Shown here piece by piece: positions 19,101 to 60,541 of a DNA stretch of 64,000 nucleotides (within the stretch, counting starts at the first letter, position 1; every line of letters starts with the position of its first letter). Where the stretch lies: sequence record NC_049383.1. One strand, 5' to 3'. Made by a program: the position numbers and the translations under genes. Below the pieces are notes generated by a model that was not told the DNA's origin, ran no database searches, and saw nothing but the letters and a program-made list of their open reading frames with translations.

Positions 19101-19276
19101 TTTATTTATGTTATTTGTATTTATAATATATAAAAGAAAATGCACCTAGGTACATTTTCACTGATTTTCTTTTAATGAAAAATTTGTTTTATTGAGAATC
19201 TTTCAAAGAATTTGTTAAAATATTATAACTACAATAATGTTTGTATATGTCAAAAATTTTTCGGGTGTAAATGTTT
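19101..19276. repeat. dispersed ~176-bp non-coding repeat, copy 1
   Basis: Ungapped match with about 12 substitutions to 60366-60541; near-palindrome gaaaatgcacctaggtacattttc. Confidence 0.95.
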
Positions 19277-19621
19277 AATTTTAAACAATTTGTTATAAAA
19301 TATAAATTTTATTACTTAAAAATCTTATTATTAGGTATTTAACTAGAATTTTTAGATAAGACTAAAAATATTATTAGGTATGTCTAAAAATTCAATTTTT
19401 CAATTATTAATTAAAACTTACAGATTGTAATCAAATTATGTTAAAATACTTACATATTATAAGCAAAATCATACATTAAATTAAACATTAAAATAGTTTT
19501 TGTTGTATAGTTTCGATAACTAATTTATAATCATGTATTTAAAAATGTTAAAATTTTAATAAGTTTCCTTAAAAATGTTAGAAAGTTACAATTTATAACT
19601 TGAAATAACACATTTAATTGC

Positions 19622-19659
19622 AACAAAAAATCCCGCTATTTTTAGCGGGATTTTTTGTT
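19622..19659. terminator. intrinsic terminator (bidirectional type)
   Basis: 17-bp perfect inverted repeat aacaaaaaatcccgcta/tagcgggattttttgtt. Confidence 0.85.
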
Positions 19660-19823
19660 TAAATTTCTTCTGAAATTGATTCAACTTTTTTCTTAATTTT
19701 TGCTAATTTTTTATCCTTTTTAGCAAGCTCTTTTTCCAAAAATAATGTATAATTATTCTTATTATATGGATTGAATTTAGACAATCCTTCTTCTTCTAAA
19801 TACTTCTTTCTATACTTTGACAT
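19659..19823 (-). CDS. small basic protein (not in ORF track)
   Basis: 54 aa MSKYRKKYLEEEGL...SISEEI filling the gap before the terminator. Confidence 0.6.
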   Translation of the reverse strand: MSKYRKKYLEEEGLSKFNPYNKNNYTLFLEKELAKKDKKLAKIKKKVESISEEI

Positions 19824-19824
19824 A

Positions 19825-20577
19825 CTAATTATATTTACGTATTCTTAATATTTCATTATGTTCAGATATATCGATAGAGTGTTCAAACCAATCCAAATAC
19901 TCTTCCTCTGAATACATTTCAAATGCATCTTTTTGTGTAACTAAATCATTGGAAATCATACCCATACGCTTATACAATTTACGATGTGTATTTATTTCTT
20001 TTTGATTCTTACGCATAGATTTATAGAACTGGTCAACCTCATCTTTTTCAATCTTTAAATCAAGAATATCCTTACATAATTTAGTATGGAAATCATCGAT
20101 AAAGTTATGATAATCAACACCTTTAAACATATAAAGTGGGTGTAATTTTTCAATATATCTAGATGTCATTCTACCAAAGATTTGTAAATCCATATCAATA
20201 CCTTCATTAACACCTTTTGCATTAAACTCCCAGTTTTCATCAGTAAAATGATAATCATAACCTAAACGATTTTCTTTAATAAAATCATAATCTTGGTTAA
20301 TATACACGTAGAAGTTTCTTTTTGAACAACCTTTATATGCTTCTTCATAGAAAATATCAATAGATTCAATAACTATTTCTTTACGTTCTTCTCCTAAAAT
20401 ATCAGAAACATTATTATTTTTAAAAACAAATCTATTAATAATATCACCTATCCTAACATACTGATTAAGAAGGAATAATTCATAAGTATCTAAAGTTTCA
20501 GGAATATGACCATAAAACCATCTTGGCGAAACAGTAACTCTTAGTTTTGTTTCAGAATTATTTAGTTGTAACTTCAT
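19825..20577 (-). CDS. hypothetical protein
   Basis: 250-aa ORF. Confidence 0.8.
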   Translation of the reverse strand: MKLQLNNSETKLRVTVSPRWFYGHIPETLDTYELFLLNQYVRIGDIINRFVFKNNNVSDILGEERKEIVIESIDIFYEEAYKGCSKRNFYVYINQDYDFIKENRLGYDYHFTDENWEFNAKGVNEGIDMDLQIFGRMTSRYIEKLHPLYMFKGVDYHNFIDDFHTKLCKDILDLKIEKDEVDQFYKSMRKNQKEINTHRKLYKRMGMISNDLVTQKDAFEMYSEEEYLDWFEHSIDISEHNEILRIRKYN

Positions 20578-20857
20578 CTAATGTAGTTTTAAGTTTAGCT
20601 AAAACACAAATATCTGTGATTTCAATAATGTATTCATTGTTAACCTTTTCAACATAACCAACGATTTCACCTTCGACTATGTTACCAGTTTCCTCACTTA
20701 CGTATTTGTAACGATATGTTGTTTTACCAAAAAGATTAAATTCTAAATGCATTATAGTTTTTGGTGTTGTTACATTACTATTTGAAAGTGTTTTTGGTGA
20801 GGTTTGTGTAAATCCAACCCAAACTTCACCTATATTTAATAATACTGTTTTACTCAT
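20558..20857 (-). CDS. hypothetical protein
   Basis: 99-aa ORF. Confidence 0.7.
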   Translation of the reverse strand: MSKTVLLNIGEVWVGFTQTSPKTLSNSNVTTPKTIMHLEFNLFGKTTYRYKYVSEETGNIVEGEIVGYVEKVNNEYIIEITDICVLAKLKTTLDEVTTK

Positions 20858-21521
20858 TTGTTTTTAAATTTTTAATTTGTTCTTTATTTAATTCACATAT
20901 CTTACTTACAGTTCTAAACATAATTAGTAATTCTATATAACAATCTAAACTAGATGTATCAATATAGTTTAAATCTGTAAGATATGCCTTTTCGCTTAAA
21001 TCAAATTTGGTGAACTCTTTCAAAGTGTCATGTAAATTCAACTTTTGGTTATTAATTGAAAGTCTATTTTTTATTTCAATTAACAACTTTAAGTATTTGT
21101 TTGCATACTTTTTTAAATCTATTGTTTTATAGTTTCGTAGAATCTCTTTGAAAGCTCCTGTTTTCTCATCAACTTTAAAAGGTTGTGATAAGTTATTAGC
21201 CACACTAAGTACTTCAACAAAATATTCAAGTTCATTTAAGTTATAATTTGAAACAAAATTATCACATTCTACTTTCCAATTTAAACCATCTATACAATAA
21301 CACATTACGTTTTTACTACTATCTTCAACATCCTCATATAAGAACATTAACTTTGGTTTCAAGTTTTTAGATATACCAACCGTTACATTATTCTTTTGAT
21401 ATGTTAATGGGAAATCACCAGTATTATTATCTAAATGGATAAGAAATTTTAAAGCATCTTGTAAATCAACTTCGTAATTCTCATGTTTAAATATATCTGA
21501 GTATTTTTGTATTCTTTGCAT
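20850..21521 (-). CDS. hypothetical protein
   Basis: 223-aa ORF after promoter 21537. Confidence 0.8.
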   Translation of the reverse strand: MQRIQKYSDIFKHENYEVDLQDALKFLIHLDNNTGDFPLTYQKNNVTVGISKNLKPKLMFLYEDVEDSSKNVMCYCIDGLNWKVECDNFVSNYNLNELEYFVEVLSVANNLSQPFKVDEKTGAFKEILRNYKTIDLKKYANKYLKLLIEIKNRLSINNQKLNLHDTLKEFTKFDLSEKAYLTDLNYIDTSSLDCYIELLIMFRTVSKICELNKEQIKNLKTNE

Positions 21522-21536
21522 AAATAATATTTTTAG

Positions 21537-21584
21537 TAAATATATACAAAAAAATCGGAACTCCCAAAGGAAATTCCGATTTTT
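21537..21584 (-). promoter_or_regulatory. promoter overlapping terminator
   Basis: -7 variant TATATTTA (21537-44), 20-nt spacer, TTTG (21565-68) inside hairpin aaaatcggaa...ttccgatttt. Confidence 0.65.
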
Positions 21585-21588
21585 ATTT

Positions 21589-22758
21589 TTAAGGATTATT
21601 TCTACAATAATTCACTTCACAAATTTGTTTCAAGCAATCATCATATGCTTTATGTGTTAATAAAGGGTAATGAACTCCATTTGATAAGATTTCACTTACT
21701 ACGCTTTTATCGTTTCTTAACTCCCATTCATCAATGATAGTTCTTATACATCTTGATTTGTTATAAACCATGAAAATATCATAATCAAATGCTGTTAACC
21801 ATTCATTTATAATACGAGTATCAAAATCAGGTGATTTACAATAAATGAAAACATTATATTTTTTACTAAGGTTTTCATAGAACATTTTAAATTCCATTAA
21901 AGCAACTAATAATTCAACATCTGAATCATTATTATCAAGGAATGTCATTGAGTCTTTGTTTTGTTTCATCCACCACATAATAGTGTTCATTTGTGGATAA
22001 ACATCTAAGCCTCTACGCTTATACTTATCATAGCACTCAATATCAATATGTGTTTCGAATATCAAATCATCATCAATTCTAATACCAAAATTATCAAATC
22101 CAATTGCTGAAATAGATGTTATTGGAACTAAACCTTCATGTTCTTTTCCTAAAGTTTCAATATCTAACATTAAATCCAATCTAGGTTTTGATTTATTATC
22201 AATTCCCAAAATATTGTTTATTTGTTCTGTTACAAAATATATATCATCTTCACCATTTATAACATGAGCATTTTGTATATTATTTAAAATAGGTAATGTA
22301 CTTTCTTCATATACTTCCAAACGTTTTTTAATAATACCAACTTCTGAATCTTCAATACGACCGCTTGTTTTACCCCTTTCTAATGAACGTGATATAACAG
22401 TATCATCATTAACATGAATGTATATAACTTCAAATTCTATATTTAATTCGCGACAAATTGTGTTTTTTAGATATTCAAATTGCTCTATCGTTCTACAAAC
22501 ACCATCGAAAATAAAAGGTTTATTATATTGTCGAAGTCTAGTAATCTCATCACGCATGATTTTAAGTATAACATCATTCGGCATTAACTTACCTTCTTTA
22601 TCCAATTCGATTGCTTGTAATCCAATTTCTGTTTTATCCTTTTTATGTCTTCTTAGGATATCACCCATTCCAATATGGATATAACCTATTTTTTTTAGTT
22701 TTTCGGATTGTGTACCCTTTCCGCAAGCAGGTTTACCTATTAAAAGTACTGATTTCAT
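21589..22758 (-). CDS. adenylate/NMP kinase fused to DEDDh 3'-5' exonuclease
   Basis: GKPACGKGTQ, HIGMGDILR, DGVCRTIEQ, GRIED; C-terminal LDIETLG, PDFD, HKAYDDC. Confidence 0.85.
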   Translation of the reverse strand: MKSVLLIGKPACGKGTQSEKLKKIGYIHIGMGDILRRHKKDKTEIGLQAIELDKEGKLMPNDVILKIMRDEITRLRQYNKPFIFDGVCRTIEQFEYLKNTICRELNIEFEVIYIHVNDDTVISRSLERGKTSGRIEDSEVGIIKKRLEVYEESTLPILNNIQNAHVINGEDDIYFVTEQINNILGIDNKSKPRLDLMLDIETLGKEHEGLVPITSISAIGFDNFGIRIDDDLIFETHIDIECYDKYKRRGLDVYPQMNTIMWWMKQNKDSMTFLDNNDSDVELLVALMEFKMFYENLSKKYNVFIYCKSPDFDTRIINEWLTAFDYDIFMVYNKSRCIRTIIDEWELRNDKSVVSEILSNGVHYPLLTHKAYDDCLKQICEVNYCRNNP

Positions 22759-22771
22759 ATATTTGTTTTGT

Positions 22772-23095
22772 TTATGATTTTGCTGATAAATTAAAATAAT
22801 AGTTCCCAGTTATGCTACCGTCTGTATAGCTTAATCTGAACTTATAAATTCCACCACCTTTTTTATTAGCTACCTTATTACCTTCTGCTTTGAAAAATAG
22901 TGAATGTGGTGCTTTTTCGATTAGTGTTATTTCGAAGTTCTCATCCAAATACTCAATATGGTTGAAAACTTTTTTATTGTCGTGTCTTACTTTACCAATT
23001 CTCAAATGTCTGAACTCGTTGAATAGATTATTCAAACCTATTTGAACGAGTTCAGAATTTGTTTTAATTTGGTTTATATCTAACCCATTAAGCAT
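22772..23095 (-). CDS. hypothetical protein
   Basis: 107-aa ORF. Confidence 0.75.
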   Translation of the reverse strand: MLNGLDINQIKTNSELVQIGLNNLFNEFRHLRIGKVRHDNKKVFNHIEYLDENFEITLIEKAPHSLFFKAEGNKVANKKGGGIYKFRLSYTDGSITGNYYFNLSAKS

Positions 23096-23211
23096 TACTC
23101 TTTGATGTCTTCTGTAATCGTTTGCTCTTCATTAACGATTCCATCTTCAACTTGTTTAGTTTGTTCAACATCTTGGCTATCTGTAATCATCTTGTTTTCA
23201 TCTTTAATCAT
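23095..23211 (-). CDS. small acidic peptide (not in ORF track)
   Basis: 38 aa MIKDENKMITDSQDVEQ...EDIKE; TAATG-coupled to the next gene. Confidence 0.5.
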   Translation of the reverse strand: MIKDENKMITDSQDVEQTKQVEDGIVNEEQTITEDIKE

Positions 23212-23216
23212 CGTTT

Positions 23217-23843
23217 TTAAATTTTAGTTATAGACTTTATTCTACCATATATTTTATAATCTCTTGCGTATGGTTCGCCATTATTCTTTACTTTATTGAA
23301 AGTGTATTTGAAACAATTAGCTTCATTTTGACCTTTATACATATCTCCTGATGGATAATGAATTGACTTTATAAAAAGAATTTCTTCTCTGTTTGGGTCT
23401 TTACCCACACCCATAAATTGAGAATAACAAACTTTAACTTTATCACCAACTTTTAGTTTCGAATTGTTAGTATATTCCATTTTTATGTTACGTAATTCAA
23501 TCTGCATTTCTGTAATCTTACTTTCAATATCAATTATATTTTTCATATCATATAATGATTTCAAGTAATTTGAGTAATTTTCTGATAAGAATAACTTAAA
23601 CTCATCAATCAATCCGATAACATCAAATTCAAATCCTTTTATATTTTTCACATAAACCTTTTTGAAAATACCACTTATCTCAATAACTATTGTTTTATCA
23701 CCTGATGTTACATTAGTCATGCAATGACGTAGGATTTTATATTCTTCATTTAATTCGAATATTTTACCCAACTTATTCGATGTAGCACCTTTTTGATTGT
23801 AAATAAGCAGGTTTCTACCCATTTCAGTTAAAATTTTACTCAT
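23217..23843 (-). CDS. hypothetical protein
   Basis: 208-aa ORF. Confidence 0.8.
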   Translation of the reverse strand: MSKILTEMGRNLLIYNQKGATSNKLGKIFELNEEYKILRHCMTNVTSGDKTIVIEISGIFKKVYVKNIKGFEFDVIGLIDEFKLFLSENYSNYLKSLYDMKNIIDIESKITEMQIELRNIKMEYTNNSKLKVGDKVKVCYSQFMGVGKDPNREEILFIKSIHYPSGDMYKGQNEANCFKYTFNKVKNNGEPYARDYKIYGRIKSITKI

Positions 23844-23844
23844 A

Positions 23845-24543
23845 CTATACAGATAGGTTTAAAAGTGCGTTGATTGTCTCAATATTGTTTGAAAGACGAT
23901 TCTTTTCCTTTTTAATAGAATCTAATATTATATATCTAAATTCAGGATTTTCAGAAGTCTCTAAATAATAACCTTCCAAACTATTTAAAATTTCAACATT
24001 GTTATTTTCTATATTTTTAACAAAATCAAATAATGAATCACTTATTAAATCAAAACAGTTGTTTGAACTATGATTATTTAATTTCGAAAAACGAACCATT
24101 ATATCATTTAGTACTTTCTTGTAAAATGTAAGTTGCTCCAAACGCTCATCCTCATACATGATATAATCCTTTACTTTTTGGTATATCTCTATATTTGTGA
24201 GGTCAAAAGGATTTTCACCATCCAAATTATAATTTTTGAACTTACCTCCCAATTTATACTTTTGGATATTATCAACTTTGTTATACTCTTGATACAAACG
24301 ATAAACAACACTTTTTAAAGCTCTTAAATCTGATTCACTTTCACCTTTGAAATATGTATCTAATTCATTATATACTAAATCTTTGATATCGAAAATTTCA
24401 TCATCAACATCATCAATCATAATAGATAAATCATTTATAAATTCCATTGATTTTTCAAAATTAATACTTCTTTCAGATTCCTTATCTTTATCAAAATCTA
24501 GTAGTTCCTTATATGAAACCAAACCTAATATTCGTCTTAACAT
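23845..24543 (-). CDS. hypothetical protein
   Basis: 232-aa helical ORF. Confidence 0.8.
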   Translation of the reverse strand: MLRRILGLVSYKELLDFDKDKESERSINFEKSMEFINDLSIMIDDVDDEIFDIKDLVYNELDTYFKGESESDLRALKSVVYRLYQEYNKVDNIQKYKLGGKFKNYNLDGENPFDLTNIEIYQKVKDYIMYEDERLEQLTFYKKVLNDIMVRFSKLNNHSSNNCFDLISDSLFDFVKNIENNNVEILNSLEGYYLETSENPEFRYIILDSIKKEKNRLSNNIETINALLNLSV

Positions 24544-24546
24544 ATC

Positions 24547-25485
24547 TTAATTTATTTTAGTTAAAAATTCGTTTGCTAATGTATGTGATTTGAACTTTAT
24601 TTTTATCTTTCCGTTCTTAGAAAGTTGATAGTATTCTATAATATCAGTTCCAGTCATTTTCTTATCATAAATACATTTTTCATCATCTAAACTATAATTA
24701 TGATTTATACAGAACTCCTTAATAAAACCTTTATAAGTCAAAACATCTGATACACTAGAATCATACTCTTTGTATAATTCATTTATTACAGTTGATAATG
24801 ATTTTATAAGTTTCAAATTATAGTCTCTAGCATGGTGACTCTTTGGATTATTCAAAATACTAGGAAATGATAAAGAACCATTTTTAGCAATTATCACATC
24901 ACCTCTGTGTGTATCTTCATTATACAATTCGTAAAGGAACTTTTTAGATTCTAAAATTTGATGTTCATTCAAATCTAATCCACCTATTTGTTCAAAAATA
25001 TAATCAATAATAGTATCATAATGTAATTCTAAATCAGAAATAGCACTATATTTTACCTTATCACTCATACCCCAATATGTCGGATAACGAGAGTGATTAT
25101 ACAATTGTTTAACAGCATAACCATCTGAAAATTCCCACTTCTCAATATCTATTTCGATATTGTATTTCTTGCAAATATATTCTGATACAGATTTTATGAA
25201 TCTATGGTGACAGTTTCCTGCATCTTTTTGAGCGACTAATAAAGATTCTTTTGAATCGAAAGACATATACTCAAAAGTGTTATTAAAACTAGTTCCGTTT
25301 ATAACTCTTTGTTTTAATTCAGGTTTTATATTTCTAAGTTGTTCTAAAGATTTAATACACTCTTTATTGTATTGTAATGCTTCTTTATAATCATTTAAAA
25401 GAGCATCTAAATATGATATATCTTCATGCGGTAATCTATTGGTGTTGTCAACTTTTACGTTGCTAAATTTTCCTAGTAAATCCAT
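24547..25485 (-). CDS. hypothetical protein, possibly DUF4942-like
   Basis: C-terminal LSKNGKIKIKFK resembles the DUF4942 terminus; start moved to MDLLGKF, downstream of promoter 25506. Confidence 0.5.
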   Translation of the reverse strand: MDLLGKFSNVKVDNTNRLPHEDISYLDALLNDYKEALQYNKECIKSLEQLRNIKPELKQRVINGTSFNNTFEYMSFDSKESLLVAQKDAGNCHHRFIKSVSEYICKKYNIEIDIEKWEFSDGYAVKQLYNHSRYPTYWGMSDKVKYSAISDLELHYDTIIDYIFEQIGGLDLNEHQILESKKFLYELYNEDTHRGDVIIAKNGSLSFPSILNNPKSHHARDYNLKLIKSLSTVINELYKEYDSSVSDVLTYKGFIKEFCINHNYSLDDEKCIYDKKMTGTDIIEYYQLSKNGKIKIKFKSHTLANEFLTKIN

Positions 25486-25505
25486 TATTAAATTGTTTTG
25501 TTGAG

Positions 25506-25544
25506 CAAAAATAAAAAATCCTTTGGAAGTAACCAAAGGATTTT
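25506..25544 (-). promoter_or_regulatory. promoter overlapping terminator
   Basis: -7 TATTTTTG (25506-13), 20-nt spacer, TTTG (25534-37) in the stem of aaaatcctttgg/ccaaaggatttt. Confidence 0.75.
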
Positions 25545-25548
25545 GTAA

Positions 25549-26070
25549 TTATTTTACTTCAATAAGTAAATCATATTCCAATTTATATCTTGCAACATCA
25601 CCTTCTGAATTAATTAACTCAAATCTAGCATTACTGAAAACATATTTTGTAGAACCTTTAATGTTTAAAGTGTATGATTCCTGTCTAAAAGACCTAAATT
25701 CACCATGCTTCCACGGATATGATGTTGTTTTAACAACAACATGAACTTCGCGCAATTTTTTATCAAAGAAATAATCTAAAGTTTTTGTTTTTGAAACAGC
25801 CCTATAAGAATCAAATGGAATTTCAGGATATGTGTAGATAGTATTGAATGATGTTAAATACAATCTAGTACTAGTCCTATGACTATTTAGTGTTGGTGTA
25901 CTACAATTAATAAACTCACCTTTTGAGTTCTTTTTAATATTCTTTGATGATACTCTATTTGTATGAGCATTATAAACTGTTACATACTTATCGTCTTTAG
26001 AAAGAATGAAAACACCTCTATAGTAAGGACATTTCATTAACATTTCAGTTAAATTATTGAAATTTTTCAT
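25549..26070 (-). CDS. hypothetical protein
   Basis: 173-aa ORF, last gene before the 25515-25544 hairpin. Confidence 0.75.
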   Translation of the reverse strand: MKNFNNLTEMLMKCPYYRGVFILSKDDKYVTVYNAHTNRVSSKNIKKNSKGEFINCSTPTLNSHRTSTRLYLTSFNTIYTYPEIPFDSYRAVSKTKTLDYFFDKKLREVHVVVKTTSYPWKHGEFRSFRQESYTLNIKGSTKYVFSNARFELINSEGDVARYKLEYDLLIEVK

Positions 26071-26072
26071 AT

Positions 26073-26909
26073 TTATAAATTTATTGATTTTACATATTCA
26101 ATGTGTTCACTTGACATAGGTGTTCCATGAAAGTTAACACCTAAAAATACATTTTTAACATCTTGGTCTGTAGCCAAGTCACCTAATTCACCATAAGATA
26201 ATCTACGATAGTCTAAAAACATTCTCTTAGCAACTAAAGATAAATCCTTCCAGTAAATACCATCTTTAGTACAAAATTCATTTCTGAACCATCTAATCAA
26301 AGTAGTTAATCTTTGTTTACCGTCCACAACCTCACACATAGATGCATCACTTGGTTGTTTATGATACATTTCTTTACACCACTCATATGAACGAGTTCTT
26401 AAAATAATCTTACCAATATCAACATTATTGAAAATAGACTCTATTAACAATTGTTGTTGCTCTAAAGTCCAAACAAAATCACGTTGATAACGCTCAATCT
26501 CACCATCTTTGTTAACCATAAAAGGATTGAAATTACAAGCAACTAAATCATAGGTGTATTCAGGTTCTTCACGAAACTTTCCTGACATTGCATCAAATCC
26601 CATGACACTAAAAATACTAGATAAACCATAACTAATATTTCTAAGCTTAGAATCCCAACGGAACTTCGGGAATGGGTTGATACCAATATTTCCAATATAA
26701 ATTTTATATTCGCCATCAGCAACAAATACAGGTTCTTTATATCCAAATTGTTTATAATAAACACCACCATCAGAAATTGAATGAACTTTAGCAGTATTAA
26801 TATATGCATTCTTATTCTTAGTTCCAAGACCTTTAGGTAATATAGTATCACCAACTTGAACTGGTCTTTCTAAATGTTCTTGAATTTTTTGTTCTAAAGA
26901 TTTTTTCAT
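26073..26909 (-). CDS. DUF262 (ParB/Srx-like, GmrS-type) domain protein
   Basis: YQRDFVW, LIESIFNN, VVDGKQRLTT. Confidence 0.85.
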   Translation of the reverse strand: MKKSLEQKIQEHLERPVQVGDTILPKGLGTKNKNAYINTAKVHSISDGGVYYKQFGYKEPVFVADGEYKIYIGNIGINPFPKFRWDSKLRNISYGLSSIFSVMGFDAMSGKFREEPEYTYDLVACNFNPFMVNKDGEIERYQRDFVWTLEQQQLLIESIFNNVDIGKIILRTRSYEWCKEMYHKQPSDASMCEVVDGKQRLTTLIRWFRNEFCTKDGIYWKDLSLVAKRMFLDYRRLSYGELGDLATDQDVKNVFLGVNFHGTPMSSEHIEYVKSINL

Positions 26910-27815: not shown

Positions 27816-30800
27816 TTATTCTACTCTTTTACTTTTTTCACCCCAACTTAAACGCATACCACCTTCTTCATCATAGTGTTTCTGAATCAATGAACCTAAT
27901 ATATCACCATCAACACCAAACTCTTCATTTACATCTTCCTCTGTAGAAACCTCAGTTGTTTTAACAAAATTATTAACCTTTTCTTTGTTCAAAATCAAGT
28001 TTAAAATGTTTAAATCGATTGATTCCGAATAACAGATTAAATGTACTTGTGTTTTATTTTTAGAATCAAACCTAATAGTTCTACAATAAAATTGAGCTAA
28101 TGAACTATTATTCCAAGGAAGACTAGGTATAATAACAGTATTACATTCAGGTATGTTAACAGATGATTTTAAAGATGCTTGATTCGCTACAATAATAGCA
28201 TTATCAGTATTATTGAAATGCTCTATTATTTGACCCCTCTTTTTAAATGAAATTGTGCCATCAACATAAATAACTTCTCTATTCGGGAATGTCTTTTTAA
28301 TGTGATTAAAATAACTCTCTGTAGATTCTATACCTACACAACCAACTAAAATTTGCTCGTTTGGTCTTTCCTCTATCATCTTTATAACTTTAGCATACTT
28401 TGTCGGCAAACCTTCACCAATCCACTCTTTCATTAAATGAGGTGATGTAGTCGATTTAATCAATAAATTAATCATACGTATAATACGTAAATAAGACTCT
28501 TTACGACTATTTCCTGTTGATTGGAAGTAGTTATAACACATTTCATGGAAACGCTCTAAAATATCCTGTTGTAACACCTTTTCGGCATAATTTGGTTGAA
28601 CAAAGTGTGATATCATTTCTTTTTTATCACCCATCAATTCTTCCATTGTTCTAGTGATGATACTTGAATTAATAATATCCGTTAAATCGCTTAAATTATA
28701 TAAATCCTGTAACTCTTTTTGTATTCCAAATACACTAGCTTTTGATGGTGCGAAACAGCTTTTAAAAGTACCGAATCCGTAATAAGCATCGAATGGTTGA
28801 AATCTCTTTTTATTAATATGTGATTTAATTTCCTTTGTCTTTTTATCCTGCTTATAAATTAACTGTACATTACACATCATGTTATATGAATTGTTGTACA
28901 TCAATTCAATATTTGGATAAATCTCGTTTAAGTTATTTCTAGTTGGTGTACCTGTCATTAAAATTGTACGGTGACATCTTCTAAATGCATTCAAAACAGC
29001 TCTAGACCTTTTAGATAAACGGTTCTTAACTTCATCACTTTCATCAAATATTAGAGAAACTTTGTTACTTCTAGACTTAACAAATTCTTTTACCTCATCC
29101 TTTAAGTTTCTCAAACGACCTAATGTAATTAATACAACTTGACCTTCTTTAATCTTGTTTAAATCATCAGCTTTTAAAATCTCAATATAATTAACACCGT
29201 TCGTTTTTAAAGTATTTTTTAAAGTCAAATCTAATGCGATAGCAGGTGCAGTAATAAATACATTCTTTGTTAGATTGTTTTTAGTCAAGTATTTAGATGC
29301 GCATAATAAAGCAACTGATTTACCACCACCCATAACCCAACTTAAAAGGGTATGTTTTCTAGTTAATACCTTCTTAACATCTTCTTTTTGAATTTCATTA
29401 AGTTTATGACGTTGACCTTTTGAAATAAATGAGAATCTGTTAACATATGAGTTTACTTTTTTATCAATTTGTAAATCTGTAAGTTTACAATTATGTAATA
29501 AATAATCCTTAATTTTTCTATTTACAACTTTTTTTAACTCTGTAGTATCTAAGTTTAAAGACTTACAAACATTCAAATACTTTTCATATTCACCCGACAT
29601 TGTTACAAGTTGATAAATAGAAACAATAGTTGAGTCGTTAACTTTTTTAGAAAGTAATTGTTTAGACTTGTTAGAATATGCCTTAATCTCGAAGCTATGA
29701 CCTTTTTTAATGACTCTAATAACATCTTTTTGAACTTTGGCTGAATTACTCATAACTCTTTTAAAAGTGGCTAAAACCTTATTTTTTGTAAGTTTAATTT
29801 TATCCCACTCTTCCCATTCCATACCATCAGGACGCTTTTGAGTATTAAATTTTTCAATCAATGCTTGCGCCTTTGCATAATAGTATTGTAAGTTTTTATG
29901 TGTTCTAAACTCATATAGATACTTTCGAACTTTATATTCAAATTCACTATCATCAGACTTAATCTCTGTCATAGTTTTAGCTCTTAAAGATGATTTAATC
30001 TTTCTAAGAACTTCTATTTTATTTTTTATATCATCCTTTGTTGTAAATTCGTTAACAAAAGAAACATCCGATACGTGTTCACTTTTACGTTGGAAAAACA
30101 TAACTTTAGTAGCGAAATTATCAACACCCATTTGTTTAAATTCATTATTAGATAACGGATATTGACCAATGAAGTTAAAAAACTCATTCATTCTCTCGAT
30201 ATCCTGCTTATTCATCATTTCATCATTTAAGAATGACTTAGGAACAATTAAAGCCATGATTGCTAAAGGCTTCATTAATTCTGCTGACTTTTGACAAACA
30301 TACATCTGTGAAGACATACCACCAAAATCTAAATTAAAAGGTGGATTCAATACCAATGTATCAAACTTTAATTTAGGTTCATATGCTCTAATATCACAAT
30401 TCTTAATACTTGCTTCGGGATATAAGAAACGAGCAACACGAGTCGCTTTAGAATCAATATCACAACCATATGCATTATGTAAATTTGGTAAGAAGTTGAA
30501 AAATGAACCTGAACCACAAGTAAGGTCTGCAACTAAATCATTTTTATCAATGTTTAAAATATCAACAACATCAATAGACGTACTATGTGGTGTGAAAAAT
30601 TGACCCGCTTCTAAATCCTTCTTTGCTTCTGTATAACTATGGAATGACGAAAAATCTTTGAAGTTAAGACCATGCAAACCACCATCACCAGTATATGCAT
30701 TATAAATATCTTCATGACTAAGACCCTGTAAATCACCAGTTTCAATAAGATGTAGGATTTTATTGTTTATATCTTTTCTTGCTTCTTGTGGTATTGCTTG

Positions 30801-30821
30801 ATTTTTATAATGATATTTCAT
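27816..30821 (-). CDS. amino (N6-A/N4-C) DNA methyltransferase - SNF2-type helicase fusion
   Basis: GQFFTP, DLTCGSGSFF, LNPPF; helicase MGGGKS, DESDE, MTGTP, QFYCRTIR; start moved to MKYHY, downstream of promoter 30846. Confidence 0.85.
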   Translation of the reverse strand: MKYHYKNQAIPQEARKDINNKILHLIETGDLQGLSHEDIYNAYTGDGGLHGLNFKDFSSFHSYTEAKKDLEAGQFFTPHSTSIDVVDILNIDKNDLVADLTCGSGSFFNFLPNLHNAYGCDIDSKATRVARFLYPEASIKNCDIRAYEPKLKFDTLVLNPPFNLDFGGMSSQMYVCQKSAELMKPLAIMALIVPKSFLNDEMMNKQDIERMNEFFNFIGQYPLSNNEFKQMGVDNFATKVMFFQRKSEHVSDVSFVNEFTTKDDIKNKIEVLRKIKSSLRAKTMTEIKSDDSEFEYKVRKYLYEFRTHKNLQYYYAKAQALIEKFNTQKRPDGMEWEEWDKIKLTKNKVLATFKRVMSNSAKVQKDVIRVIKKGHSFEIKAYSNKSKQLLSKKVNDSTIVSIYQLVTMSGEYEKYLNVCKSLNLDTTELKKVVNRKIKDYLLHNCKLTDLQIDKKVNSYVNRFSFISKGQRHKLNEIQKEDVKKVLTRKHTLLSWVMGGGKSVALLCASKYLTKNNLTKNVFITAPAIALDLTLKNTLKTNGVNYIEILKADDLNKIKEGQVVLITLGRLRNLKDEVKEFVKSRSNKVSLIFDESDEVKNRLSKRSRAVLNAFRRCHRTILMTGTPTRNNLNEIYPNIELMYNNSYNMMCNVQLIYKQDKKTKEIKSHINKKRFQPFDAYYGFGTFKSCFAPSKASVFGIQKELQDLYNLSDLTDIINSSIITRTMEELMGDKKEMISHFVQPNYAEKVLQQDILERFHEMCYNYFQSTGNSRKESYLRIIRMINLLIKSTTSPHLMKEWIGEGLPTKYAKVIKMIEERPNEQILVGCVGIESTESYFNHIKKTFPNREVIYVDGTISFKKRGQIIEHFNNTDNAIIVANQASLKSSVNIPECNTVIIPSLPWNNSSLAQFYCRTIRFDSKNKTQVHLICYSESIDLNILNLILNKEKVNNFVKTTEVSTEEDVNEEFGVDGDILGSLIQKHYDEEGGMRLSWGEKSKRVE

Positions 30822-35249: not shown

Positions 35250-35289
35250 CAAATATAAAAAACCTTTTGGAAACTACCAAAAGGTTTTT
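35250..35289 (-). promoter_or_regulatory. promoter overlapping terminator
   Basis: -7 TATATTTG (35250-57), 20-nt spacer, TTTG (35278-81) in the stem of 13-bp hairpin 35258-89. Confidence 0.8.
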
Positions 35290-45208: not shown

Positions 45209-45248
45209 TAAAAATAAAAAATCCTTTGGAAAACACCAAAGGATTTTT
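45209..45248 (-). promoter_or_regulatory. promoter overlapping terminator
   Basis: -7 variant TATTTTTA (45209-16), 20-nt spacer, TTTG (45237-40) in the stem of aaaaatcctttgg/ccaaaggattttt. Confidence 0.65.
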
Positions 45249-53351: not shown

Positions 53352-53352
53352 A

Positions 53353-53901
53353 TTAATTTGATTTTATATTTAGTGTTAAAAACCTAAGATATGCTATTGA
53401 CCAAAGTGGGTCAACAACCTCTGTTAAAGCGTTAATATCAAATGTACTAACCCAACGATTTGATGAAATGTTTTCGTTCATATCATTTTCATTATCGGGT
53501 TTAGGTTTTGTTTGAATAGCATTTGTACAATCTACAGCAAATAAGTGATAAATAGTATCTGTGCTTTTTGTACCATAACAAGTTCCTAATGGTGAAATAT
53601 CTGAGTATTTTATTAAATAACCAGTCTCTTCCATCATTTCCTGTTTTACTGTCTCTTTCGGATGTTGACCTTTTTCAACACCACCAGTAACTGATGAAGG
53701 ATTTTTGCCCATATTCCAACATGGTGTATATTCGTCACGTATCATGACTTCCAATTCACCATCCACAAATCTAAAAGGTATAATTGCAACAATATTACCA
53801 TCACATCTAACCTCGCGCGTGTATGTGTACTTTCCTGTAGGAAACTCTTCTTCAATAAGCTCTATCCATTTGTTAGAGCCTAAAATTGTCTTTTTATTCA
53901 T
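53353..53901 (-). CDS. Nudix hydrolase
   Basis: Nudix box GGVEKGQHPKETVKQEMMEETGY. Confidence 0.85.
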   Translation of the reverse strand: MNKKTILGSNKWIELIEEEFPTGKYTYTREVRCDGNIVAIIPFRFVDGELEVMIRDEYTPCWNMGKNPSSVTGGVEKGQHPKETVKQEMMEETGYLIKYSDISPLGTCYGTKSTDTIYHLFAVDCTNAIQTKPKPDNENDMNENISSNRWVSTFDINALTEVVDPLWSIAYLRFLTLNIKSN

Positions 53902-53902
53902 T

Positions 53903-54190
53903 TTAATAAGTTGTTGATGTTACCCAACTTTGTCTAGGATGATTCGACATCCTAGATTCATCTTTTTCGGTAACGGTTAATACTTCTTTTTCTACGGTCA
54001 TTATTTTTTCATCAACAATAATATTATCAATACTATGCCTTGAACATACTTTATAATTCTGATATAATTCTAATACCTCACTAAATACAAATTGTGGAAT
54101 TTCACCTGCCACTAGTGTTATTGTTTTAGAATGATTATCAATCTGAATTATATAGTCTTTGGTTTTAATTAATGATTTTATTTCTTTCAT
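53903..54190 (-). CDS. hypothetical protein
   Basis: 95-aa ORF. Confidence 0.7.
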   Translation of the reverse strand: MKEIKSLIKTKDYIIQIDNHSKTITLVAGEIPQFVFSEVLELYQNYKVCSRHSIDNIIVDEKIMTVEKEVLTVTEKDESRMSNHPRQSWVTSTTY

Positions 54191-54204
54191 AATATCTATA
54201 TTTT

Positions 54205-54927
54205 TTAACCAAAAATTAAGAAACCAGTCAAAACAGTAATAACAACACCCATTAAGAATATAATACCTCTTTTACGTTGGTTTGATTTAACAGAATCTTT
54301 AATAATATTTTCCTTAATCACAATAGATGTTTTGTGAGATTCTTTATGTTCTTTCAACTCTTTTTCCAACTCATAGTTTCTATTACGCAAATAACCTAGT
54401 TCAGAATCAACATCACCTTTCAATGATATAACACCATTTGAATGTAAATTACCATTTTCAAAAATAAAACCTAATAATTTTATTTTCAAAAATATATCCA
54501 CTAAAAACCTTTCATCTTCGTTTGTCGCAGTATAAAATCCGTGATGTCTTTGTATAAATTCTACAAATCTACTATAGTTTTCTGTTTTATAAACTTTTGA
54601 AAATTGTAATATTTTATCAAACTTATAAAAAGATAAATTAGAATCATCAAGACATAATACGTTATAACCACCTTTCAATAATTCAAACTCATCAAGTTTA
54701 TTGAAAAGTTCGTTATTTTTCAAGTCGTCTAACATTTCTTTTCTTAGTTCTAATGACATTTCAGCATTTAACATTTCATTCCTAAGACTATCAATAGATT
54801 TTGCTAATTTATACTTCTCACAAATATTTTCTATTTCATCAACCTTCTGCATTTTCTCATATGCATCTTTTAGAATTTCGTATTCTTTATTAGGTACAAT
54901 CCTATCGTGTTTAATTATCAAATCCAT
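54205..54927 (-). CDS. coiled-coil protein with C-terminal TM anchor
   Basis: Ends RGIIFLMGVVITVLTGFLIFG; start set at the TAATG overlap 54927. Confidence 0.75.
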   Translation of the reverse strand: MDLIIKHDRIVPNKEYEILKDAYEKMQKVDEIENICEKYKLAKSIDSLRNEMLNAEMSLELRKEMLDDLKNNELFNKLDEFELLKGGYNVLCLDDSNLSFYKFDKILQFSKVYKTENYSRFVEFIQRHHGFYTATNEDERFLVDIFLKIKLLGFIFENGNLHSNGVISLKGDVDSELGYLRNRNYELEKELKEHKESHKTSIVIKENIIKDSVKSNQRKRGIIFLMGVVITVLTGFLIFG

Positions 54928-55691
54928 TACATAAAAATATTTAAAGCGATTGAACCAATTGTAATACCTAATCCTAAGTAAAACATCCATCTATTAGCAT
55001 AGTATTTACCATAGTATTTTTGAAGCTCTTTTTGACTATCTTCATAATTTGATGTAATACCTTTAATACTATCTTCTAAAGTTTTATTTGTATTTTTAGT
55101 ATCAACACTATTATAAATTATTGTATAAATAGCTGATTCTAAATCAATTCTATCAGATTTTGTTAATCCTGACAAATCGAATGATTTCATTAGTGATTTG
55201 AACGCATCACAAACATAAGAAGTCTCATCTTCAATACTATTACCGAAGTATGGGTTATTTTTATTTTTAACACCCATATCATATATTTTTACATTATCAC
55301 CTAAAAACATACTTAAAAACTTAGTCAAACCTTTAATATTAAACTCAGATTCATCAGGCATATTTTCAAAATAACCATTGAATGTTTTATACAAATTAAC
55401 CGATAATACATTACCTTTTTGAATCTCTTTTTTCAAAAAATCAAAATGTTCTTTAGTAAGATTCTTAACTTGCTCCAATTCTTCTTCTGCAACAATTTTA
55501 TCATGTTCCAATGCTGTGATTTCACATTGAATTTCATGAGAATAAGCCATCGAATTTATAATTGGTTGTGAATAATTTTCACATAAATTATTTTTTAAAA
55601 CCGTCTCACAGTTTAAAAGTTGTTGTAATCGGTCACCTTTTACAATAACCGATTCAACATTGTTTTCATTAGTAATATCTAATCTCTTCAT
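54927..55691 (-). CDS. coiled-coil protein with C-terminal TM anchor
   Basis: Ends RWMFYLGLGITIGSIALNIFM. Confidence 0.75.
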   Translation of the reverse strand: MKRLDITNENNVESVIVKGDRLQQLLNCETVLKNNLCENYSQPIINSMAYSHEIQCEITALEHDKIVAEEELEQVKNLTKEHFDFLKKEIQKGNVLSVNLYKTFNGYFENMPDESEFNIKGLTKFLSMFLGDNVKIYDMGVKNKNNPYFGNSIEDETSYVCDAFKSLMKSFDLSGLTKSDRIDLESAIYTIIYNSVDTKNTNKTLEDSIKGITSNYEDSQKELQKYYGKYYANRWMFYLGLGITIGSIALNIFM

Positions 55692-55692
55692 A

Positions 55693-56709
55693 TTATTGTT
55701 GTTTTTGTTTCTTAACTAAGAACTGAACCTCGGAACACATAGCCATTAAACTAGTTAATTGGTCGGGTTTATTCAAAGATTCGTTTTTATACTTATGAGC
55801 CATTACATACAAATACTCTAAAATATTCGTGTTAATATTATTCTCATACATCCATGTAATCATTTTATCACCCATAGCAATAATTAGGTTATAATATTGA
55901 TTAGGGAAATTCTCTAAAATATACTTCTTAATTGTTGTTATAGATGTAGGTTTAGTAAATAACTTAAAATAATCAACAAAATCAGCAGACATTTCACGTA
56001 AAATAAGTTCCTTTGTAATCGTTCTTTCACCCTTCTCATAACACGTTTGTAAAGCCTCAATAATATCTCTAACATCAGAATATGATGATAATAAAGACAT
56101 AACAGCATCCTTCTCTATTGTTAAACCTTCCTCATTACAAATAAACATAATTCTTTTAGCTTTTTGCATAAGAACTTCTCTAGCTCTATCACCACGAAAG
56201 TTGAAATCAATCTTACAACCAAATCTTGATAAAATTGCTTTATTTAAGTTTTCATAGTAGTTACAAGTAGCAATGTAACGAACATTATTTGAATCCTTTT
56301 CCATTACACCACGGAAAGCTAAGTTGGCATCGTTGGTGAAATTATCAATCTCATCAATCATCATTAGCTTAACTTTTGATGATGATGAACTTACATTACC
56401 AAAAGGTTCGATAATATTTCTAACAGTATCTATACCATTTTGTGATGAACCATTTATTAATTTATTGTTGGGGAACAATTTACCCAAAATAAACATAACT
56501 GTTGTTTTACCTAATCCAGTATCACCATACATTAAAATGTTTCTTGTAACACCATTATCAATAAAATACTGAATCTGTGTCCTAACATCGTTTGGTAACG
56601 CAACATCATCAAGATTTTTAGGTCTATACTTTTCAACCCATAGTGATTTTTTACGTGTTTTTTGTTGCTCCTTAGATAAAGGATTCTTTTCTTTACGTAC
56701 TATACTCAT
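55693..56709 (-). CDS. sliding-clamp loader ATPase subunit (RFC/T4 gp44-like)
   Basis: WVEKYRP, GDTGLGKT, IDEIDN, SRF arginine-finger motif. Confidence 0.92.
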   Translation of the reverse strand: MSIVRKEKNPLSKEQQKTRKKSLWVEKYRPKNLDDVALPNDVRTQIQYFIDNGVTRNILMYGDTGLGKTTVMFILGKLFPNNKLINGSSQNGIDTVRNIIEPFGNVSSSSSKVKLMMIDEIDNFTNDANLAFRGVMEKDSNNVRYIATCNYYENLNKAILSRFGCKIDFNFRGDRAREVLMQKAKRIMFICNEEGLTIEKDAVMSLLSSYSDVRDIIEALQTCYEKGERTITKELILREMSADFVDYFKLFTKPTSITTIKKYILENFPNQYYNLIIAMGDKMITWMYENNINTNILEYLYVMAHKYKNESLNKPDQLTSLMAMCSEVQFLVKKQKQQ

Positions 56710-56730
56710 AAATATATTTTTGTTTTAGTT

Positions 56731-58197
<1,467 letters not shown>

Positions 58198-58212
58198 TAA
58201 AAAATATGTTTT

Positions 58213-59859
58213 TTATTTTAATTCTACAAATCCTTGCTTTCCAAGGGTGTTTATTTTTACTAATTCTACACCTTCTAAATCGAAATCCTTCCCAACACCA
58301 TAAATTGATGGTATATTCAAAGACTTTGAAAGTGCTAATATGTGCGAAAATACAACATTTTCTCTTACTATCAAAATTTCTTTGTCGATTAATTCCTTAG
58401 ATTCACATTCAGAGTCTATTACAAGAACCTTTTCGGGTATAGCCATGTTACTACCTCTACAATGAGAAGTACCTAAAATTGCATCACTAGGCACTTTTAC
58501 ATCCTTAATTGATTGCGTACTCGTAACTCTCAATTGTAAAATATGAATATTAAAACCATCAAAACAAAACTCAATTTGTACATCAGATTCAAAATCCTTA
58601 GATAATTCCATAATCAACCTCTCAATATAATCAGAAACCAACTTGGAAACCTTTATTTCACTAACTTTACCACCAACAATATCATCACGCTTGTCTGATA
58701 TCGCAATATCAAATTTACCATCATAAACATTAGCAACACCAATATAACCTTCAACCTCTCTTTGATAAAAATAATGAAATTCATTTTGTGGTCGCAAATC
58801 TTTATACTTTTCATATTCAGATTCCATAGTTTTTATAGTTTCTTCACATTTTTCAGTAGAAATACCAAAGTATGAAGTTAAAATACCACCCATAGACTTA
58901 TTTGGAGACGTTCTAAGAGCATATTTACCATCTAAAGGTGTCTTACTATACTCAGGAATAGAAACGTCCTTAAAACGGCTTAAAAATGCTAATGAGCCAA
59001 ATTTAGCACCACACTTCTCTTCTTCGATAACATAATCCAATAAAGCCTTTGATGTTGTCCTTCCACAAGCGTAAAATTCATTAAAATGATTTCTCATGTG
59101 ATATAACATCTTTAGTTGCTCTTCTGTTGGTTTATGTTTCTTTTTATCCATCATCCAGTTTCTCTCCAATACATTTCCCAAATAGTTGCATTTAACTTGA
59201 CCACTTGAAATATGTAAAACCTTTCGTTCATTAGAATCGAACCAACTATCCGTACTACTCAAACCAGTTGCGTGTAAAAGTGGGTATAAATCAACATGAC
59301 CTTCAAATCCACATTCAATAAATAAACCACATTGAGTTATTACACCGTTTCTTAATTTTTGCTCTTGTGTTAACGGATATTCATTAACATTATCCATCGA
59401 ATACACACCAAAATTATTATCTATGAAAATAGAATCACGGAATATTGTTCCTAATGTCTCAGCTTTAAAAACTTTTTTCAATGCAGTAACATCCCTATCA
59501 TCGAAATCATTATCTAAAACATATTCAATTTGATATGTCTCATAGGAAACTCTATAATCTCTATTTAAACGACTTAATAAAGTTCTCCAACCAGTATAAA
59601 GCATTTCGTTTGCTGTCTCTAATTCAGATATATCATGTTGAGGTGTTATATAAATACCTTCTTCGGTTCTTGTATCACCTGCTAAAATAAAAGCCTTTCT
59701 AAAGAAGCCCAAAATATAAACCATATGTTTTTCATCATTGATATCCAAACCACCCGATAAAATAATTTCCAATGCTATGTGAAATTCTCCTGATGATATA
59801 TTATCTTGAATCTGTCTTGTTAAATCTTCACCTAATGCGTAAAATGATAAACTTGCCAT
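58213..59859 (-). CDS. PEP synthase/PPDK-like dikinase-fold protein with phospho-His swivel domain
   Basis: ALRTSPNKSMGGILTS, VQIEFCFDGFNIHILQLR, FSHILALSKSLNIPSIYG. Confidence 0.7.
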   Translation of the reverse strand: MASLSFYALGEDLTRQIQDNISSGEFHIALEIILSGGLDINDEKHMVYILGFFRKAFILAGDTRTEEGIYITPQHDISELETANEMLYTGWRTLLSRLNRDYRVSYETYQIEYVLDNDFDDRDVTALKKVFKAETLGTIFRDSIFIDNNFGVYSMDNVNEYPLTQEQKLRNGVITQCGLFIECGFEGHVDLYPLLHATGLSSTDSWFDSNERKVLHISSGQVKCNYLGNVLERNWMMDKKKHKPTEEQLKMLYHMRNHFNEFYACGRTTSKALLDYVIEEEKCGAKFGSLAFLSRFKDVSIPEYSKTPLDGKYALRTSPNKSMGGILTSYFGISTEKCEETIKTMESEYEKYKDLRPQNEFHYFYQREVEGYIGVANVYDGKFDIAISDKRDDIVGGKVSEIKVSKLVSDYIERLIMELSKDFESDVQIEFCFDGFNIHILQLRVTSTQSIKDVKVPSDAILGTSHCRGSNMAIPEKVLVIDSECESKELIDKEILIVRENVVFSHILALSKSLNIPSIYGVGKDFDLEGVELVKINTLGKQGFVELK

Positions 59860-59861
59860 AA

Positions 59862-60257
59862 TTAAATAAATGTTGCTAATGATAAATCTTTGTTAATACT
59901 AGTACCACAGTTTGTTGCCTTGTTTATTTTAAAAACCTTACCAATACAACCATTTTTAAAATTAATCAAATCTTTGTCATTTTGACCATTGAACTGTTTT
60001 AATTTATTAATCTCACCAAATGGTGTATCAATGAAGTGTGGAAACCAAATATTAATAACTTCCAAACTCAAAAAGTTTTTTGATTCATGTATAACTCTAC
60101 AAGTTCGACCAAATCCAGTAATTCTACTTGGTTTTAGTAAAACCAATTCACCAACTTTTATTTCCGATGAATTTATTTTAAAAATTCTAGTTGCGTCAAT
60201 TGATACAACTTCACCAATCGGAAACGCTTCTTTTAAATTTTGTTGAATAGTATTCAT
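59862..60257 (-). CDS. hypothetical protein
   Basis: Start set at MNTIQQ, downstream of promoter 60295. Confidence 0.75.
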   Translation of the reverse strand: MNTIQQNLKEAFPIGEVVSIDATRIFKINSSEIKVGELVLLKPSRITGFGRTCRVIHESKNFLSLEVINIWFPHFIDTPFGEINKLKQFNGQNDKDLINFKNGCIGKVFKINKATNCGTSINKDLSLATFI

Positions 60258-60294
60258 AATTTTATGTTTTATTTTTAATGAATTTTTGATACAA

Positions 60295-60325
60295 CAAATG
60301 TAAAAACAATTATCCATTAAAACAA
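60295..60325 (-). promoter_or_regulatory. Bacteroidota-type promoter
   Basis: -7 TACATTTG (60295-302), 20-nt spacer, TTG. Confidence 0.7.
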
Positions 60326-60365
60326 GAATTTTTATAAGAATTTTTTAAACCTCTCTCCGCGCGCT

Positions 60366-60541
60366 TTTATTTATGTTATTTGTATTTATAATATATAAAA
60401 GAAAATGCACCTAGGTGCATTTTCACTGATTTTCTTTCAATGAAAAATTCGTTTTATTAAGAATCTTTCAAAGAATTTGTTAAAATATTATCGCTACAGC
60501 AAGGTTTGTATATGTCGAAAATTTTTCGGGTGTAATTGTTT
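60366..60541. repeat. dispersed ~176-bp non-coding repeat, copy 2
   Basis: Matches 19101-19276; contains perfect 24-bp palindrome gaaaatgcacctaggtgcattttc (60401-24). Confidence 0.95.

Follow-up and report, generated by a model that had tools for sequence, protein, structure and literature searches.

What function is served by a palindrome-centered non-coding element that stands twice, 41.3 kb apart, in one stretch of a giant phage genome? The stretch analyzed here (the window, 64,000 nucleotides) corresponds to bases 1-64000 of Tenacibaculum phage pT24 (LC168164 / NC_049383), whose genome totals 234,670 bp; a BLAST search of INPHARED matched the element to pT24 at 100%, with identical window coordinates. 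pT24 is a lytic giant myovirus with a G+C content of 28.85%, of whose 296 genes 41 are annotated and 255 have no assigned function, and repeats go unmentioned in its genome announcement (PMC5502841). A sequence-only reading of the window had described two copies of ~176 nt and proposed a family of spaced cis-sites. This proposal is strengthened by our analysis: the element is one of seven related modules that are evenly spaced, oriented with the neighboring genes and, in six of seven copies, preceded by a cluster of TGTTAA sites. Our preferred, still tentative, interpretation is that the modules are protein-bound cis-acting DNA sites that would act over 20-40 kb domains, most probably as replication-initiation sites with a built-in terminator.

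The family has exactly seven members in the whole pT24 genome. BLAST, a fuzzy palindrome search and an nhmmer core profile agree on this number and detected no degenerate extra copies, and a search for partial hairpin-tail blocks elsewhere in the genome returned A+T-rich noise only. The palindromes of copies 1-7 start at 19136, 60401, 79594, 119019, 139195, 182108 and 211607. All copies share a core of 150-152 nt at 88-100% identity, while the adjoining flanks differ. Four copies (60.4, 79.6, 139.2 and 182.1 kb) form type A and share 400-450 nt at 89-95%, two (119.0 and 211.6 kb) form type B and share 395 nt at 95%, and copy 1 has ~190 nt in common with type A. Module length across the family is 190-450 nt and every copy lies in a large intergenic gap. 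Copies 1 and 2 occupy the two largest non-coding gaps of the window (18812-19658, 847 nt, and 60258-60811), each between a terminator and a fresh promoter, as the sequence-only reading had it. Positions 19100-19288 and 60365-60553 align without gaps and in the same orientation at 92.6% identity over 189 nt, and the 24-nt palindrome is indeed perfect in copy 2 (60401-60424) and carries one mismatch in copy 1 (19136-19159); a palindrome search allowing ≤3 mismatches gave 2 matches compared to 0.00 expected from 100 shuffles. The repeats described earlier are thus real, but both their number and their extent had been set too low: the full genome holds seven copies, which does away with the possibility of only two copies from a recent duplication, and copy 2 spans ~415 nt rather than ~176. 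The family members in the window are the following, all on the minus strand.

19100..19288, minus strand: copy 1, consisting of the core and ~40 nt found otherwise only in A-type copies (BLAST, nhmmer); it has no TGTTAA cluster
60327..60742, minus strand: copy 2, a full A-type module of ~415 nt, 89-95% identical to the copies at 79.5, 139.0 and 182.0 kb (self-BLAST, alignment)
60365..60516, minus strand: core of copy 2, 152 nt, common to all seven copies (nhmmer, pairwise identities)
60350..60364, minus strand: G+C-rich box of copy 2, gene-sense GCGCGCGGAGAGAGG, directly after the tail and present in the four A-type copies only (alignments)

The copy-1-specific portion of the 847-nt gap also contains a 48-nt imperfect palindrome (19346-19393, 79% self-complementary), and two more small hairpins are located between the copy 1 tail and the next promoter.

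Module orientation tracks gene direction, a feature that had escaped the sequence-only reading. In the left arm, where genes lie on the minus strand, four copies carry the originally described orientation on the plus strand; in the right arm, with genes on the plus strand, three copies carry it on the minus strand. Orientation relative to the neighboring genes is consequently constant in all seven copies, and the gene-sense strand is the reverse complement of the strand read originally. The two-sided binomial probability of complete co-orientation is 1/64. The gaps between copies on the circular map are 41.3, 19.2, 39.4, 20.2, 42.9, 29.5 and 42.2 kb, which is more even than expected by chance. 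In 100,000 random placements, a minimum gap of at least 19.2 kb occurred with P = 0.006, a maximum gap of at most 42.9 kb with P = 0.0004 and a coefficient of variation of at most 0.29 with P = 0.002; restricting the random sites to intergenic regions with a minimum length of 35, 100 or 200 nt leaves these values unchanged. No base of the pT24 genome is farther than ~21.5 kb from a module.

Read in gene-sense, the palindrome and the sequence following it have the form of an intrinsic terminator, likewise overlooked before. A G-C-containing 10-bp stem with a CTAG loop is followed on the sense strand by the T-run TTTTATATAT.

19136..19159, minus strand: copy 1 palindrome, -10.3 kcal/mol in gene-sense and followed by the T-run; only -5.6 kcal/mol on the plus strand owing to a C.A mismatch
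60401..60424, minus strand: perfect palindrome of copy 2, 24 bp, with the same energy (-12.3 kcal/mol) on both strands and a T-run directly after it on the minus strand only

In a terminator scan, the gene-sense hairpin is flagged for both window copies, the opposite-strand one for the perfect copy 2 only. Across the family, the palindrome is perfect in one copy and imperfect in six. The gene-sense hairpin has a predicted energy of -8.1 to -12.3 kcal/mol in six of seven copies (only -1.6 in copy 5), compared to -4.0 to -5.6 kcal/mol on the opposite strand in five copies. In these five, the gene-sense form is 4-5 kcal/mol more stable because substitutions give G.U pairs in gene-sense and C.A mismatches on the opposite strand. 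In the hairpin, only the 5' arm has substitutions. From the loop through the 3' arm and on for another 33-36 nt, the sequence is a single block of ~50 nt that is almost invariant in all seven copies and suggests sequence-specific recognition; a terminator alone leaves this invariance unexplained. The central hexamer CCTAGG is not specific to the modules, which contain 7 of its 9 sites in pT24.

Downstream of the hairpin in gene-sense, the invariant block continues into an A+T tail that is among the least stable duplexes of the genome.

19100..19135, minus strand: invariant A+T tail of copy 1 (alignment, duplex stability), containing TATAAATA
60365..60400, minus strand: invariant A+T tail of copy 2, mean nearest-neighbor stability -0.91 kcal/mol per step

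By nearest-neighbor parameters, the tail falls at the 99.93-99.99th percentile of unstable 30-40-bp segments genome-wide. Only 0.04% of all 33-bp segments of pT24, and 0.2% of other intergenic ones, melt as easily. We also considered the tail as a promoter. It contains TATAAATA, the core of T4 late promoters, but lacks the AAC that precedes it in the phage's own late-like motif AAAC(A/T)ATAAATA, is not found among the 50 best matches to that motif, and TATAAATA is not enriched in the pT24 genome. As a member of a second upstream motif class (AATTGTTATATTAAT) it scores weakly, 9.1 compared to at least 17.8 for the best sites, and it does not match the host-type promoter.

The strongest sequence evidence here for a putative protein-binding platform is a motif cluster that recurs on unrelated flanks. 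The 238 nt upstream of the core contain 5-7 TGTTAA/TTAACA sites in A- and B-type copies while 0.55 are expected (Poisson P per copy, 2e-6 to 3e-5). In the entire 234.7 kb, 238-nt segments with at least 6 such sites occur in six of the modules and nowhere else. All seven copies also keep one further TGTTAA-type site unchanged, 59 nt ahead of the palindrome. Of the 103 genomic occurrences of the octamer TGTTAAAA (complement included), 29 fall within the 3 kb taken up by the modules.

60517..60742, minus strand: copy 2 platform with 6 TGTTAA/TTAACA sites (hexamer starts 60547, 60566, 60620, 60662, 60671 and 60682)

Three of the copy 2 platform sites are direct repeats 9-11 nt apart, and the seventh, invariant site lies in the core at 60478; across the family, too, some of the platform sites are direct repeats at 9-11 nt spacing. 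Type A and type B platforms are 56-60% identical, compared to 55 +/- 2% for a shuffled null, and thus show no detectable homology; an initial assignment of ~60% homology was dropped on these grounds. The two types are nevertheless laid out alike, with direct sites at about -290 to -240 and inverted sites at about -220 to -200. The sole TGTTAA-type array outside the seven modules consists of four tandem 11-nt units of TTTAACATTTA at 114379-114420, flanked by a terminator and, directly downstream, a host-type -7 box, and preceding the block of prohead-scaffold genes.

We favor a DNA-site interpretation because a protein-bound cis-site operating at the 20-40 kb scale explains more features of the modules than the alternatives do. 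In gene-sense order, a module comprises the TGTTAA platform (~240 bp, six of seven copies), the 150-bp core with hairpin and T-run, and the A+T tail. A sequence-specific protein would bind the platform, and the site would then act on the surrounding 20-40 kb. Replication could be initiated through the combination of protein platform and unwinding tail, similar to iteron-type origins and to the promoter-plus-unwinding-element origins of T4, and the hairpin, acting as an intrinsic terminator, would keep incoming transcription away from both the site and the promoter that follows it. The number, orientation and even placement of the copies, the genome-wide uniqueness of the site cluster, the unequal hairpin strands, the instability of the tail and the lack of coding or of a conserved RNA fold are shown directly; that a protein binds, that the tail unwinds and that the sites are origins is what we infer. 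Among cis-sites of this kind, replication initiation fits best, as a putative platform joined to an unwinding element with a polarity like the one-directional start in T4. T4 replicates from at least five origins that fire at once. A promoter together with an A+T-rich unwinding element makes up a minimal origin, the leading strand is started in a single direction, and short direct repeats stand at even intervals in oriE (PMC3016281). With such concurrent, polar origins known from T4, a polar system of several origin sites is plausible in this lineage. The large terminase of pT24 shares 40% identity with its counterparts in Tenacibaculum phages PTm1 and PTm5, 31% with that of Sphingomonas phage PAU and less than 30% with those of classical T4-like phages. 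Judging by these matches and by T4-like gene names, pT24 can be placed in the T4 superfamily in the broad sense, and its nearest sequenced relatives (PTm1, PTm5 and PAU) are distant ones.

Several observations weigh against replication initiation at protein-bound sites. GC skew tracks gene direction in pT24, with a single minimum at ~123 kb and no inflection at the seven copies. Copy 1 lacks the TGTTAA cluster, no initiator gene is found next to the modules, and the platform lies ~240 bp from the tail, farther than in classical iteron origins. The platforms show no overall 10-11-bp helical AA/TT periodicity above background. From the location of the TTTAACATTTA array at a host-type promoter, the motif may be bound by a transcription regulator rather than an initiator. 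PTm1 has no comparable repeat family, and the first 50 kb of PAU are tightly packed without a large intergenic gap. T4 origins have no common sequence motif (PMC3016281) whereas the pT24 modules are a single homologous family. The uniformity of the core could result from gene conversion rather than selection. Lastly, the spacing test was picked after inspection of the data, although the effect is not marginal.

The alternative that survives best, though we consider it unlikely, is that the modules are transcription-unit boundaries and regulatory hubs. In such a hub, the hairpin would terminate the upstream block and the TGTTAA platform would be an operator cluster for a downstream or internal promoter, making the module an enlarged relative of the composite terminator-promoter cassettes of T4-type phages (promoter early stem-loops, PeSLs). 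The immediate surroundings of the two window copies bear on this.

19622..19659, bidirectional: terminator hairpin with a 17-bp stem that ends the preceding gene (19659-19823, minus strand), before copy 1 in gene-sense
18833..18862, minus strand: promoter of the host (Bacteroidota) type, TTG N20 TATATTTG, for the next transcription unit after copy 1, located 21 nt ahead of the ATG at 18811
60773..60813, bidirectional: terminator hairpin with an 18-bp stem, of the preceding gene (60812-61261, minus strand), before copy 2
60295..60325, minus strand: host-type promoter, TTG N20 TACATTTG, for the next gene after copy 2, abutting the A-type module end

The Bacteroidota-type promoter class (TTG, N19-20, TAnnTTTG) is found 20-40 nt before the ATG of ~45-49 pT24 genes. 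Every module lies just upstream of a new transcription unit with such a host-type promoter, A-type modules end at the -33 TTG of that promoter, and the terminator shape on the gene-sense strand explains the orientation rule. The only outside TTTAACA array (114.4 kb) also overlaps the -33 region of a host-type promoter. In addition, copy 5, the one A-type copy without a co-directional upstream gene, has the weakest hairpin, and pT24 and PTm1 both possess short PeSL-like cassettes, of which the module hairpin with TATATATT resembles a decayed form. A boundary function is harder to reconcile with the upstream genes, five of seven of which already have a strong terminator of their own, and with the dozens of other pT24 promoters and terminators that function with no such 400-nt module. 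Between the platform and the downstream promoter lie more than 300 nt and a terminator; the tail gets low scores for each of the three upstream motif classes of pT24, and even spacing would not be expected. A plain terminator or terminator-promoter cassette accounts for polarity and for the position at unit boundaries, but leaves unexplained how large the modules are, why they carry the site cluster, why the invariance extends past the T-run and how the copies are spaced.

The short cassettes are of interest in their own right. At 25507-25544, 35251-35288 and 45210-45247 (minus strand), and also at 62944-63023, a terminator hairpin carries a -33 TTG in its stem; after it come a T-run and the next gene's -7 box, TAnnTTTG. 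By their layout, these cassettes are the Bacteroidota version and true counterparts of T4-type PeSLs. PTm1 has its own family of short composite hairpin-promoter cassettes with at least 6 members. Two other upstream motif classes are present in pT24. The T4-late-promoter-like motif AAAC(A/T)ATAAATA occurs upstream of structural genes, in the window at 13091-13113 (plus strand), with the best sites genome-wide at 153185, 201084, 203855, 89898, 172873 and 160906; it suggests that this distant relative of T4 has a late sigma system of the gp55 type. A partly palindromic motif, AATTGTTATATTAAT(ATAACAA), is located at ~12662-12690 (minus strand) and at ~13 more sites genome-wide, 20-36 nt before ~14 start codons of mostly structural or unknown genes, and may represent a second promoter or operator class.

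Transcription of the module itself is the basis of the second alternative. The seven copies could specify sibling small RNAs (sRNAs) of ~85-250 nt, made from a phage-specific internal promoter and ending at the hairpin, or, in an antisense version, starting near it. Multi-copy sibling sRNAs are known in bacteria, the module is isolated between a terminator and the next promoter and has a terminator-like hairpin at its end, and in copies 5 and 7, which lack a co-directional upstream gene, the terminator could serve an internal transcript only. A position weight matrix built from 45 pT24 host-type promoters, however, detects no conserved promoter inside the module on either strand; good hits near modules lie downstream, outside the shared core. 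The best-conserved block continues for ~35 nt past the terminator and would go untranscribed. Both strands of a 350-nt module fold better than shuffles (z = -3.7 and -3.2), as expected because the DNA is rich in inverted repeats. For the 116-nt core, z-scores range from -0.2 to -3.9 (sense) and from +1.1 to -2.2 (antisense), and predicted folds differ between copies except for the terminal hairpin. RNAalifold found no net covariation in the family (term +0.29) and many broken pairs, and neither Rfam, at gathering and permissive thresholds, nor an ARAGORN tRNA search returned a match to the element. The duplicated non-coding RNA considered in the sequence-only reading is therefore not supported as a structured RNA. 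An sRNA accounts for an isolated unit with a terminator, but not for the remaining features such as the even spacing and the TGTTAA cluster, and we regard it as improbable.

Within copy 2, a host-type promoter directed opposite to the genes is present at 60536-60567 (plus strand; TTG, N21, TAAATTTG). It is also found in copy 6, is degenerate in copies 3 and 5 and is absent from copies 1, 4 and 7. From it, a short antisense transcript could run toward the preceding gene's terminator.

Selfish or neutral repeats without a phage function, spread as a cassette resembling a miniature inverted-repeat transposable element (MITE), by a homing endonuclease or by ectopic recombination, are very improbable. 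In favor of this reading, the family is found in pT24 alone: INPHARED, IMG/VR, JGI metagenome and GTDB genome scans and a DNA-polymerase-anchored locus search yielded no homologues outside this phage, other hits in the collections being chance matches to a 19-20-nt pattern without further similarity. Moreover, subfamilies with different flanks suggest several duplication events, and a T5orf172-domain gene on the opposite strand adjoins copy 7. Against it, terminal inverted repeats and a transposase are absent from the module, as had been noted for the window copies, target-site duplications are absent too, and the strict orientation and even spacing are not expected of selfish elements. The core is also far more conserved than the flanks, and TGTTAA clusters recur on non-homologous ones. 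A reading frame that begins with the palindrome's ATG runs open for 50-58 codons in three copies (4, 6 and 7) and stops at codon 13 in the other four; its variable columns fall 10/8/6 at codon positions 1/2/3, without a third-position excess, and it was rejected as coding, in line with the earlier statement that the element holds no open reading frame.

The enhancer of T4 late transcription is a nick at which the clamp is loaded and which has to be on the non-transcribed strand. Architectural or loading sites, either parS-like sites for condensation or segregation or strand-specific sites, for example a hairpin nick, for sliding-clamp loading in late transcription, would fit the even spacing, polarity, palindrome and short repeats, and a strand-specific nick would fit an orientation that flips with gene direction, but they are hardly probable for a lytic headful-packaging phage without a known need for segregation, in which a Pfam scan of ten window proteins detected no ParA or ParB domain and CCTAGG also occurs outside the modules. 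Likewise, no Pfam domain, and no DNA-binding or partition domain, is present in the four proteins next to copies 1 and 2. The trans partners put forward earlier gain no support: the helicase among them, a 1479-aa protein, gives only a weak, sub-threshold Pfam match to ResIII, and nothing points to packaging, another role suggested at that time.

Beyond the modules, pT24 completely lacks several 6-bp palindromes. Compared to counts expected from shorter-word frequencies, ACATGT occurs 0 times (~28 expected), CTTAAG 0 times (~39) and CCATGG 0 times (~21), and CAGCTG, CTGCAG and CACGTG are likewise at zero. This looks like strong restriction-site avoidance. In a 1001-aa "helicase" (27816-30821, minus strand), an N6-adenine methyltransferase domain at the N terminus is joined to an SNF2/DEAD helicase core, a predicted fusion of a kind typical for proteins of restriction-modification or anti-restriction. 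At 56943-57081, a long trinucleotide run, (ATC)n, lies within a 488-codon open reading frame (56731-58197, minus strand) and probably encodes a low-complexity acidic tract; the product has no Pfam match.

The finding is explained neither by the annotation nor by the literature; such sites are undescribed for this kind of phage. The modules are best filed with known kinds of viral cis-elements, either origin- or enhancer-like sites or boundary cassettes. With intrinsic terminators they share the 10-bp stem with G-C pairs, the tetraloop and the T-run on the gene-sense strand. Terminators, however, need ~40 nt, which leaves the 150-nt core, the invariance after the T-run, the invariant 3' and variable 5' arms and the platform unaccounted for. 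Even as elaborate terminators, the modules would still mark transcription-unit boundaries in an almost unannotated phage.

PeSLs of T4-type phages are small, combine a strong early promoter with a stem-loop and occur in hyperplastic regions by non-essential genes (PMC2839356, PMC4122927). Like the pT24 modules, they are repeated intergenic cassettes with a terminator stem-loop oriented with transcription, and they serve as recombination substrates. The pT24 module differs in its length of 190-450 nt, in the lack of a recognizable promoter in its conserved part and in its unique putative binding-site cluster, and the family consists of seven evenly spaced members instead of many short clustered copies with a host-type promoter within the conserved cassette.

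Iteron origins have clustered, short, repeated initiator-binding sites and, adjacent to them, an A+T-rich unwinding element. The pT24 sites, 6-7 per 238 nt in six of seven copies and some of them 9-11 nt apart, are only 6-8 bp long, occur in both orientations and are missing as a cluster from copy 1, and ~240 bp separate the tail from the cluster. In a T4 R-loop origin, the transcript from a promoter enters an A+T-rich unwinding element downstream (PMC3016281). A pT24 module has an unwinding-type tail, but no recognizable promoter lies upstream of the tail and a terminator-like hairpin intervenes, for which T4 origin descriptions contain no counterpart (PMC3016281). T4's own origins are still only partly understood, and outside T4 little is known of how jumbo phages start and coordinate replication and transcription across more than 200 kb of DNA. 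Homologous, evenly spaced and orientation-locked sites would offer a directly testable sequence handle on this problem. If the origin interpretation is true, the modules would represent the first sequence-defined multi-origin system in the T4 superfamily.

The nearest resemblance in form is to the homologous regions (hrs) of baculoviruses. In SpltNPV-II, for example, there are seven hrs; each contains imperfect palindromes of 24 bp and acts as origin and enhancer (PMC4535591). The seven modules are likewise dispersed homologous intergenic non-coding regions in a large A+T-rich double-stranded DNA virus genome, with a ~24-bp imperfect palindrome around a central restriction-type hexamer, and are putatively bound by protein and acting at a distance. 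In contrast, hrs consist of tandem 60-70-bp units that each contain a palindrome, while a pT24 module has no tandem units and combines a single palindrome with a cluster of 6-bp sites; tracking of gene direction is not reported for hrs, their host is eukaryotic and their binding protein is IE-1. The resemblance is an analogy only, without a sequence relationship. That pT24 as a whole is organized by seven hr-like modules, bound by a TGTTAA-specific protein and serving as replication-initiation and/or long-range enhancer sites, is possible but somewhat doubtful. If true, the modules would be a phage counterpart of the hrs of baculoviruses and other large eukaryotic DNA viruses, and a function as origins or enhancers would point to convergence between phages and large eukaryotic DNA viruses.

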